Source: Macrostomum lignano (Eukaryota). Taken from it: a DNA stretch of 64,000 nucleotides. Each line of letters opens with the position of its first letter. The first letter of the stretch is position 1. Shown one piece after another: positions 57,101-60,100 of this stretch. A program made the position numbers and the translations under genes. The notes beneath the pieces are model-generated. The model ran no database searches. It was not told the DNA's origin and saw only the letters and a program-made list of their open reading frames with translations. The stretch lies in assembly GCA_002269645.1 (NCBI GenBank), contig NIVC01000947.1, positions 186,001 to 250,000 on the forward strand. Direction: 5' to 3'.

Positions 57101-60100
57101 CGATTCTGTTTACAACAATTTCAGAGTACAGTTTTATCCCAAATATGTCTCATCCCATAGTAAAGATAATATTATTTAATCATAAACACAACTATAGAGG
57201 TCGTAATTGCAGTCTGTGCACTGACTGGCGGTGGAACCAAAAACAACAAAAGCAGAAGTAGTACAGAACAATGGGTTCGCTTTTTTTTTCATAAACAAGC
57301 CACGCTCTGGTAGAAAAACACAACCGGTGACATTCAAAATTCCCGCTCTGAAAGTTTGCAAAGGCGGGTTGGTTCTGGTCGCTGTTTTCCCACGATCAAC
57401 AAACTTTATGTAGAGTTCGATGCCACACAAAGAGCGGGTTTTGGGCAGTGGGGTTGGGAAAAATTGAATCATAAAACTGAGCGGGAAGGCCCAAAGGCAT
57501 GATGGAAACCAAGGTAGAAATTGTGGGTGGGGGCGGTTCGTGGCGGGGAGGTGAGGGGTTGGGGGTGAGTTTTTGACACGGTGCCAAGATCGCAGAATTG
57601 TGCTGGCTAACTAAATCGATCGGAAATAGAATGAGTTGGGGCCGTGTTGGGGGGTTTGAGCTCAGAGCGAGGGCCATAGGCCATCGACAAAGACTTAAAT
57701 AATAATGTCTTTGTCAACGCTAAAGATCGGGCGAGCCTGTTAAATCCATTGCTTTTGCCTCGAGGCCAGTTTGACTTTTTAACACATTTTACCATTCAAG
57801 CGTTGCGTCTTCTACAGTTTACACTTTGTTTTGTTTAACTTGAGCATTGTCACCTCGGTCATGCATCAGTGCTTGAGGCGATCACAGTATCCTTTGTTTT
57901 TAGTCTTGCCTGCGGTTTTTAGCGCTAGGTTTTAAGCAGTATAAGCCTGTTACGTTAAATCTCCCTTAGGGGGGTGTGGGGGGGGGCGAATTCGAGCATG
58001 GCACCTCAGCAGTATCCAAGGCTTTACTGTGGGCTGCTTGGTAATCCTTCATGCGTGACTGACTGACCCACCTAGACCTGCTACCCCCCCCCCCCCCAAC
58101 TGGCTGAGCACCTGATCCAGTGGGCAGATAGACATCAGTTACATTTGGTAATGATATATCTACCAATGCTGCTGTGATGCAATCATCTTTTGTCTGCCAG
58201 TCAGCCAAGCCAGCATCCTACAAACAAAGAAGGAATCCGTGCTTTCGGACTGGCTGGTGGATTCCTCTCTCTCCCTTCCTTTTCTTCTTTCTAATCGGCA
58301 ATTGAAACTTTTCTATCGAATAGAAGCATTTTCATTATTGCGTAACTGAGGGCACGGAGGCTTTGAGGGGGCGCCTTTAGAGCTCGGTGCGTGAGACCCA
58401 TTCCGGAGCGAATGGTGCGAGAGGGAATGAGTCGGAGTCGTGTGCGGACTGTGAGAAGCCCTCTCATATTTTTGGGTGTCTGTCTGGCATCTGGCCAAGT
58501 TTGTCTCCAGTTGTTTGTTTCGTCTGCTCTTCAGCTAAGACTGTCAATAGGGGCTGGTTTTCACTACTGGGTCTTTGTGTGGTCCCAGGCGCAGGGGTTA
58601 GGGATAGATAATTGATTGAGATAAATAGATAGATAGATAGATAAATAGATAGATAGATAGATAGATAGATAGATAGATAGATAAATAGATAGATAGATAG
58701 ATAGATAGATAGATAGATAGATAGATAGATAGATAGATAGATAGATAGATAGATAGATAGATAGATAGATAGATAAATAGATAGATAGATAGATAGATAG
58801 ATAGATAGATAGATAGATAGATAGATAGCTAGATAGATAGATAGATAGATAGATAGATAGATAGATAGATAGATAGATAGATAGATAGATAGATAGATAG
58901 ATAGATAGATAGACAGGACAGAAATACAGAAAGGCGGCCACTCACTCCTTGACGGGCAGCTGGTGCTGTCTGAAGGCCCCGCACCGAATCACCAGCCGCA
59001 CAGCCTGGTTGTTAGCCGCGGCGGCTTCGAAGTTGCCGTGCAGGTAGAGCCGCACGGGCGCCAGCTCCTTGCACCAGAGGCTGGCCAGCACCTCCCGGTT
59101 CTTCAACACGATGCTCTTAGTGATCTTCTCGTCTGGCGCGGTCAGCGCCCTCTCCATGATGTCCTTCTCTGCCGAGTGGAAGCCGATGGCATACCACAGG
59201 CTGGACCCGCCCGAAGCATTCAGTCGCTGGTGAAACGAAGCCGCAGTCTGGGACTCGATCTCCTCCAGCCTCAGCTGCAGGTTGTACGGGCCCGCCTCGC
59301 TCTGGGTGCTGATGCTGGCGTCGTCGGGGTGACTTGTTGGCGTCGCTGAACTGGTCGGAGCGTCGACTTCCAGGTCGATGAGACCGTCTGACTGGTCAGC
59401 CAGATGCTGCTGCTGGCTGCAGTGGCTGGGGGTTGTCGATGAAGGCGTCTTGATGACGGAGCTCTGGGCTCCGCAGGGGCTGCCGCCGCTCATTGCCGAG
59501 GCTGCCGAAGCTGACGCCGCGTTCTGGCCGCTGTTGTAGTAGGCGTCATTGTTCAGCCGGAAGTCGCTGGGTGTGAGATGGATCGGGTGGGGGTAGGTGG
59601 CTGGTCATCGTTGGTTGTTTTCTCAATGCGGGAGATGCACTGTTGTCGTCTGCTGTCATCTGCCCCCTGAGATACCCAATCCACCCCCTGAGACACCCAA
59701 TCCGCCGCCTGAGACACCCAATCCGCCCCCTGAGACACCCAACCCGCTCCCTGAGACACCCAATCCACCCTCTGAGACACCCAATCCGCCCCCTGAGACA
59801 CCCAACCCGCTCCCTGAGACACCCAATCCACCCTCTGAGACACCCAATCCACACCCTGAGACACCCAATCCACCCTCTGAGACACCCAATCCGCCCCCTT
59901 AGACACCCAATCCACACCCTGAGACATCCAATCCGCCCCCTGAGACACCCAATCCACACCCTGAGAGACACCAATCCGCCCCTGAGACACCCAATCCGCT
60001 CCCTGAGACACCCAGTCCGCCCCCTGAGACTCTTAATCCGGCCTCTGAGAGACACAATCCGCCTCCTGAGACACCCAATCCGCCCCCTGGGACTCTTAAT

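Follow-up and report, generated by a model that had tools for sequence, protein, structure and literature searches.

Few features of p53 have been studied as intensively as its zinc site. Its canonical ligands are provided by loop L2 (C176-x2-H179) and loop L3 (C238-x3-C242). All four residues have been described as conserved out to an annelid homolog (PMC8901663). Factors of the p53 family also occur in flatworms, e.g., Smed-p53 of Schmidtea mediterranea and p53-1 and p53-2 of Schistosoma mansoni, and the flatworm homologs were tied to neoblast and epidermal/tegument lineages and to genotoxic responses (PMC9478680). Furthermore, a preprint describes p53-type motifs as a conserved accessible-chromatin marker of the epidermal lineage in three flatworms, with Macrostomum lignano figuring beside planarians and schistosomes (PMC11398382), which fits a p53-like factor active in this lineage; the responsible gene is not identified by that result. 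Here we analyzed a stretch of 64,000 nucleotides of M. lignano DNA (assembly GCA_002269645.1, contig NIVC01000947.1, positions 186,001 to 250,000 of the forward strand), hereafter called the window. An earlier note made from the sequence alone had proposed that it encodes a highly divergent p53-family DNA-binding domain with swapped zinc ligands. Our data make it likely that the gene in question codes for a very divergent p53/p63/p73-type transcription factor. Sequence comparison barely recognizes its DNA-binding domain, which would possess a zinc site of the composition Cys3His1.

The gene lies on the minus strand of the window between positions 60578 and 51163 and is an intact nuclear gene of five exons with a product of 875 amino acids. 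GT-AG borders were found at every junction of this model. The motif CTVC, the candidate for the ligand pair of L2, rests on the splice between exons 2 and 3. Exon 2 ends with ...CCC GTC AAG GA/GTGAGT at 58946, while exon 3 starts at 54789 behind CCCCCGCAG with G TGC ACA GTG TGC, the acceptor being preceded by the polypyrimidine tract CCCCCCCGCAG. Joined in phase 2 (GTGAGT...CAG), the frame reads LPVKE-CTVCSDQ. The same 58946/54789 junction is used by the UniProt entry A0A1I8GTI2 (P0001), whose sequence agrees with the translated exons at 100% identity, and by the NCBI entry PAA58426.1 (P0006), which stems from the homeologous copy of the gene and has the exon-5 architecture. Since two independent M. 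lignano annotations agree on this junction, the splice underlying CTVC is supported. Thus, the junction from which the earlier note had read PVKE-CTVC was recovered, and its second motif, LYYT-CMTTH, was located at 54521-54507.

Exon 1 ends with the donor AA/GTGAGT at 60430/60429, and the same exon-exon junction was seen in A0A1I8GTI2, PAA58426.1 and a further UniProt entry (P0002). A second in-frame ATG (MLAAQ) is present upstream at 60713, and the open frame extends back to 60959. Exon 4 ends with TA/GTGAGT, a donor splitting an apparent TAG stop (53266-53264); its fusion to exon 5, the acceptor of which reads CTCTCCCGCAG/TCACATG, keeps the frame and results in ...SSV-Y-HMPDM.... The available models differ at the 3' end: A0A1I8GTI2 splices the polyglutamine (polyQ) run out as an intron, whereas PAA58426.1 continues into exon 5. 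The proposal that a polyQ tail replaces the SAM domain was therefore correct only in so far as Pfam disclosed no SAM domain in the 875-amino-acid product and none is contained in any gene model. In the five-exon model, the protein continues beyond the polyQ run, as the GTGAGT overlaps the TAG and exon 5 adds 259 residues.

An exhaustive phmmer search with the window domain against 1.84 billion cluster representatives yielded a single distant relative, which is another M. lignano protein (P0003; PAA59970.1 / A0A267EEJ4; E 3e-15), hereafter called the paralog. It is approximately 24% (23-25%) identical to the window protein over the domain. No relative outside M. lignano was found at E up to 0.001, and for this reason the window protein is far from the other flatworm p53s, too. 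Word-indexed homolog searches with the domain and with the alignment of the paralogs also returned M. lignano copies only. As relatives were found in M. lignano only, it is plausible that the gene is a lineage-specific paralog.

To the vertebrate family, the domain was connected by profile comparison. A profile of the two paralogs was aligned by hhalign with a profile of 18 vertebrate p53/p63/p73 domains, the sequences of which had been gathered with a human p63 domain query (only vertebrates were among the 120 matches listed). The comparison gave a score of 39.5 (E 4.4e-5), while 200 column shuffles reached 14.2±2.7 (maximum 24.5) and the reversed profile 12.6; the real score lies nine standard deviations above the shuffles. 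Under a permissive setting (mact 0.05), the match was collinear over 189 columns and covered strand S1, H193, loop L3, strands S9-S10 and the motif R273/P278/R280/D281 up to helix H2. Among the aligned pairs were SEAGPYNLQLRLEE and TDYPGPHSFDVSFQQ in the region of strand S1 (posterior 0.4-0.9), SLWC and KLYC, the histidine H193, VEY, LETLD and LETRD, and, at the loop-sheet-helix motif, GRCVFRMRMVTSPERD and GRRCFEARICACPGRD. Used singly, the two paralogs each aligned over this segment with an unchanged register (E 0.0036 for the P0003 paralog).

The Pfam family P53 (PF00870) was reported for the window protein and A0A1I8GTI2 with 16 bits (E 0.012) and for P0002 with 17.1 bits (E 0.005). The match is a partial one, comprising profile positions 91-189 of 193, i.e., the C-terminal half of the model, which corresponds to exon 3. 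The only other domain match in the window protein, P22_portal over 22 residues (E 0.48), was attributed to chance. The paralog did not match Pfam P53 at E up to 1; it possesses a SAM-like C-terminus (residues 575-610; SAM_2, E 0.014, 16 bits, below the cut-off of 20.5) and is named 'SAM domain-containing' by UniProt. As this corresponds to the architecture of p63 and p73, it was counted in favor of family membership. The intron positions of the two paralogs are not shared and presumably do not coincide with those of human TP53 either, which is uninformative. Taken together, these results lend modest support to placing the protein in the p53 family. The divergent DNA-binding domain proposed by the earlier note thus found support in the profile-profile comparison, the HMMER match to Pfam P53 itself being sub-threshold.

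The residues contacting DNA were compared in an alignment of 17 sequences that included vertebrate domains. All 17 share the residues G, R, F, R, P, R and D of the loop-sheet-helix motif. With FRMRMVTSPERD aligned to FEARICACPGRD, R390, P395, R397 and D398 of the window protein correspond to R273, P278, R280 and D281, all of which are invariant in the alignment and kept in the paralog, while S394 takes the position of C277, which is Ser in both M. lignano proteins. Thus, the equivalents of R273 and R280-D281 are indeed retained, and the loss of the R248 loop, replaced by HSHDATAPNSK, and of C277 was likewise seen. Opposite R248-R249, hhalign placed S-K of the window protein and K-K of the paralog, whose L3 has the canonical length. 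The assignment of TKS to K120, also made in the earlier note, found no support: hhalign preferred to pair QTAAS with STAKS, so that Ala falls opposite K120 (with a low posterior), and Lys is missing from the paralog where the window protein reads ITKS. With the equivalents of R280 and R273 being kept, the window protein probably still reads the p53-like C...G core via the major groove. In the mechanism suggested by these alignments, the β-sandwich would present the loop-sheet-helix motif to the major groove, where R397 would read the conserved G, and the altered L1 and L3 as well as the C277S exchange would change how flanking bases and the minor groove are contacted. The protein would be a nuclear, sequence-specific transcription factor, with the long Q-rich C-terminus probably serving as activation region.

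The four candidate zinc positions read Cys-Cys-Cys-His, compared to Cys-His-Cys-Cys in canonical p53; all four are residues able to coordinate zinc and are presumed to bind metal. For L3, hhalign paired YTCMTTH with FMCNSSC, and TCPSSH of the paralog was aligned to MCNSSC without gaps within a segment of 56 columns showing 36% identity. Because the C-x3-H of the paralog aligns ungapped to C238-x3-C242, the His occupies the position of C242, and we regard the L3 part of the exchange as solid at the level of the alignments. For L2, hhalign paired VKEC with VKRC and thereby C258 with C176 (posterior approximately 0.5-0.6), the ungapped continuation setting C261 opposite H179. Between strands S4 and S5, neither the hhalign nor the MAFFT alignment shows a conserved Cys/His pair other than C-x2-C. 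In a predicted structure (see below), a helix begins right behind C258, which resembles the position of helix H1 behind C176 in p53, the confidence being low at this site. Judged by these alignments, the L2 part of the exchange is likely but not certain. The strongest argument for the four-residue set is its conservation across the paralogs. At 24% identity, five of the nine Cys and four of the twelve His residues of the window domain are conserved, and all four candidates, C258, C261, C347 and H351 (C124, C127, C213 and H217 of the domain), are among them. Whether orthologs share the swap could be addressed only with one M. lignano paralog, which keeps both C-x2-C and C-x3-H. In such a site, one structural zinc would tie L2 to L3 as in p53, with C258 and C261 contributed by L2 and C347 and H351 by L3; its composition would stay Cys3His1, the histidine being shifted from L2 to L3.

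Structure prediction was carried out with AlphaFold (AF2) using a mixed alignment that combined 15 vertebrate domains with those of the window protein and the paralog. Strands S1 and S3-S10 and helix H2 were modelled with predicted local distance difference test (pLDDT) values of 70-92, the strands in the exon-2 half of the domain reaching 68-88. All top matches of this model in Foldseek were p53 cores (template modelling score approximately 0.55). About 40 extra residues, predicted to be helical and encoded by exon 2, lie between S1/S2 and S2' near L1/S2, and L2 is approximately 29 residues longer than that of human p53. The helical insertion and a C-x3-C-x-H extension behind helix H2 appear to be additions specific to this lineage.

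Outside the DNA-binding domain, a p63-like transactivation motif and an oligomerization-like segment had been put forward. VFQQHW (60470-60453) is present and shows the F-x3-W spacing of the p53/p63 transactivation motif with Cys at the position of L26; it is too short for statistics. Its identity as a transactivation motif found no support, as the third hydrophobic residue is lacking and Pfam P53_TAD (PF08563) did not match the window protein. The segment DGSLIIRG...RELIASAL (53584-53513), thought to be oligomerization-like, scored 10.7 by hhalign against the oligomerization domain of the family compared to 9.1±1.9 for shuffles, which is a weak test given the short region, and was thus not confirmed. 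Scanned against Pfam, neither the N- nor the C-terminal region gave a match.

The M. lignano genome harbors a homeologous locus (L001; GCA_002269645.1, contig NIVC01002376.1:61885-92397) that pairs with positions 46036-64000 of the window. Introns of the two copies are 91-95% and exons 97-100% identical. Exons 1-2 differ at one of 770 bases and exon 3 at seven of 633 (98.9% identity). Over 566 codons, eight synonymous and two nonsynonymous differences were counted, corresponding to a ratio of nonsynonymous to synonymous rates (dN/dS) of approximately 0.07; the binomial probability of at most two nonsynonymous differences out of ten under neutrality is 2.4e-4. The DNA-binding domain of the homeologous copy deviates by S332N and D377G. 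In both copies, the frames are open and the splice sites canonical. The window gene evolves under purifying selection.

Several findings speak against the assignment to the p53 family and against the proposed zinc site. The Pfam P53 score stays below the gathering cut-off of 27 bits, the hhalign probability of the two-paralog profile is only 66-69%, and the window protein alone scored 18.0, which is within the noise of its shuffles (14.4±2.4). Searches of the PDB sequences by phmmer with the protein and by hmmsearch with the two-paralog profile gave noise and no p53. A tetramerization domain was not detectable, as Pfam P53_tetramer (PF07710) did not match. AlphaFold run without an alignment yielded an unusable model (pLDDT 30), and since the mixed alignment contained p53 sequences, the predicted fold and the Foldseek matches are not independent of the family; the p53 β-sandwich, which the earlier note had expected from such a check, was predicted with p53 sequences in the input only, and the outcome suggests compatibility with the p53 core but does not assign the fold independently. 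The sub-threshold Pfam score, the missing PDB match and the hhalign probability would also suit a domain that is not homologous to p53 but belongs to another or new family of Ig-like β-sandwich DNA-binding domains, its likeness in the loop-sheet-helix being convergent or due to chance. UniProt's automatic names for A0A1I8GTI2 and P0002, 'SH2 domain-containing' and 'START domain-containing', point elsewhere as well. However, Pfam found neither of these two domains in either protein and reported P53 as the only DNA-binding family. A profile score nine standard deviations over the shuffles, collinear across the whole domain, the shared S1 (G-x-Y-x-F/L-x-L), H193, LET-D and GR--F--R----P-RD, and the SAM-like domain at the C-terminus of the paralog, as in p63 and p73, leave this explanation improbable. 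Still less credit can be given to the idea that the gene is a duplicate in decay and without function, left over from a p53-family gene after the M. lignano genome duplication, its odd residues reflecting drift. Its extreme divergence, its presence in more than one copy (window and homeologous locus) and repeat-rich surroundings would agree with that. But the exons are much better conserved than the introns, and the unusual residues are kept in a paralog of 24% identity, which indicates long-term constraint. A pseudogene was ruled out by the dN/dS value together with the intact frames.

Other of these adverse points concern the zinc site of the probable p53-family protein. The pLDDT values were below 50 at both zinc motifs. 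MAFFT placed ECTVC within an insertion and aligned KNIPEAL to KRCPNHE instead, so that of the reciprocal C/H swap described in the earlier note the L3 half stood, while the L2 half depends on the alignment. Moreover, an additional C-x3-C-x-H motif (C414, C418, H420), situated about 15 residues after helix H2 in both paralogs, makes other ligand combinations possible. The paralog reads GCPAGCSH at residues 279-286, whereas no vertebrate row of the 17-sequence alignment contains an equivalent of the G-C-x2-G-C-x-H motif, which is absent from canonical p53, p63 and p73. H162, a residue of the N-terminal helical insertion, is shared with the paralog as well. Judged by conservation, C414, C418 and H420 together with H162 are candidates for a second metal site or for an alternative source of ligands. 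The domain may thus be of the p53 family without a simple swap, the extension replacing some of C258, C261, C347 and H351 or building a second zinc site, e.g., with H162. In support of this, C280, C284, H286 and H28 of the domain (C414, C418, H420 and H162) are invariant between the 24%-identical paralogs, the motif is foreign to canonical p53s, and the alignment of L2 is uncertain. On the other hand, the C-x3-H of the paralog aligns to C238-x3-C242 ungapped, and C-x2-C is situated between S4 and S5 at the place of L2, with a predicted helix next to it as in p53; the simplest explanation consequently needs no extra ligands. We consider a participation of the extension, at which the AF2 model again showed pLDDT values below 50, unlikely but the most serious of the alternatives. 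A combined architecture, in which Cys3His1 is kept with the His moved from L2 to L3 and a second zinc site on the extension, perhaps with H162, clamps the lineage-specific elements on the DNA-binding face and shifts the response-element specificity, is a slightly more doubtful proposition. Positions of all features are compiled in Table 1.

Table 1. Features of the p53-like gene, given in positions of the window.
Feature	Position	Strand	Remarks
Exon 1	60430..60578	(-)	Start ATG MTDSMHPS; contains F-x3-W motif VFQQHW
Exon 2	58946..59566	(-)	Low-complexity linker and N-terminal half of DNA-binding domain
GPYNLQLRL	59266-59292	(-)	Exon 2, S1-like, within N-terminal half of domain
SLWCKEL	59062-59082	(-)	Exon 2, within N-terminal half of domain
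VRLVIRCGA	58975-59001	(-)	Exon 2, S4-like, within N-terminal half of domain
Exon 3	54156..54789	(-)	C-terminal half of DNA-binding domain, then conserved extension and basic stretch
C258-T-V-C261	54777..54788	(-)	Proposed L2 ligand pair (vs C176-x2-H179); kept in paralog (RECAQC)
C347-M-T-T-H351	54507..54521	(-)	Proposed L3 ligand pair (vs C238-x3-C242); YTCMTTH opposite FMCNSSC in hhalign
Rebuilt L3, HSHDATAPNSK	54477-54509	(-)	Three residues longer; follows C347-M-T-T-H351
Loop-sheet-helix motif GRCVFRMRMVTSPERD	54366..54413	(-)	Window protein
G-C414-R-M-G-C418-G-H420	54300..54323	(-)	About 15 residues after helix H2; both paralogs
Exon 4	53265..53710	(-)	Acidic linker, DGSLIIRG...RELIASAL segment (53513-53584), polyQ run (53369-53404)
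Exon 5	51163..51940	(-)	259 amino acids, Q/A/S-rich low complexity, end ...AVKRRRLHGSAGSLGKLFKAKQNK, TGA stop

The surroundings of the gene are rich in repeats. Just upstream of exon 1, a very regular tandem repeat fills positions 60987-63633. Its 31-bp unit (CCTCAGATCCTTCAGTAGATGGCGCTGCCCT, 96% matches) occurs 85.7 times, and the same 31-bp array is carried by the homeologous locus. The introns and the 3' flank are crowded with further tandem repeats (59658-60397, 58619-58913, 56744-57030, 54846-54975, 53770-54059 and 53000-53190). Intron 1 contains a 21-bp unit repeated 34.6 times, intron 2 the array (AGAT)x74 right behind the 58946 donor as well as 24-bp and 28-bp arrays, and intron 3 a 23-bp array, while a 34-bp array resides downstream of exon 4. 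On the opposite strand (+), exons of a carnosine N-methyltransferase were identified at 47483-48934 (Pfam CARME, E 5e-62). In the homeologous locus, an annotated CARME gene of 24 kb (positions 5743-29953) encloses the whole p53-like gene, and hence the latter may reside within a CARME intron; alternatively, that gene model may be chimeric.

The gene of the SAM-bearing paralog (PAA59970.1) is located at positions 6001-13088 of another locus (L002; NIVC01002207.1) and has three coding exons with intron positions unlike those of the window gene. The UniProt entry A0A1I8HBP9 (945 amino acids) is a model in which this paralog is fused to an upstream 2-hydroxyacid dehydrogenase gene, which explains the name of the entry. 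Elsewhere in the window, remains of retrotransposons were detected at 7028-9510 (-), 29355-31663 (+) and 31832-35129 (+), comprising two pol regions of the long terminal repeat type (reverse transcriptase, RNase H, integrase) and one element of the long interspersed nuclear element type (order endonuclease, reverse transcriptase, RNase H). As their coding regions are split over several frames, these elements are probably degraded. An open frame at 14035-14460 (-) carries a C3HC4 RING finger at its end (Pfam zf-C3HC4_3, E 6e-8); it probably belongs to an unrelated gene as one of its exons.

NCBI lists the product of the gene as 'hypothetical protein', and no precomputed Pfam domain is recorded for it. 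Without a p53 name, without a Pfam domain and with a score under the cut-off, the gene is missed by standard annotation, as the earlier note had suspected. A literature search with the term Mlig-p53 and the locus tags revealed no description of these M. lignano genes. If the assignment is true, two previously unrecognised p53-family genes can be named in M. lignano, which serves as a transgenic model for stem cells and regeneration, and genes like these would be overlooked by domain-based annotation. Should M. lignano have no canonical p53, the two would be the p53-family factors of this established flatworm stem-cell model. A zinc site selectively kept with its His on the other loop would show that the constraint acts on the Cys3His1 make-up rather than on each position, and the protein would offer a natural scaffold to study the zinc-dependent folding of the p53 core.

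Compared with vertebrate p63 and p73 (TP63/TP73), the domain is collinear from S1 to S10 and helix H2 and shares H193, LET-D, G-R-x-x-F-x-x-R, P-x-R-D and the Cys at position 238. In both, a Cys/His ligand pair, proposed in the case of the window domain, is found in L2 and another one in L3, and the SAM-like C-terminus of the M. lignano paralog resembles the vertebrate architecture. The window domain differs by its low identity to the vertebrate domains (approximately 19-28% in the 17-sequence alignment) and its sub-threshold Pfam score, by the exchanges of C242 to His, C277 to Ser, R248/R249 to Ser/Lys and, most likely, H179 to Cys, and by its additional elements, i.e., three more residues in L3, about 29 more in L2, the helical insertion of about 40 residues and the extra C-x3-C-x-H motif. 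Detectable transactivation, tetramerization and SAM domains, as present in p63 and p73, are lacking in the window gene, the tail of which is Q-rich. The best precedent for a divergence of this kind is CEP-1 of Caenorhabditis elegans, a p53-family member that was missed by searches at the BLAST level and that combines the p53 fold with lineage-specific changes in its loops and a C-terminal SAM domain. Unlike the Macrostomum proteins, CEP-1 keeps the canonical identities of the zinc ligands.

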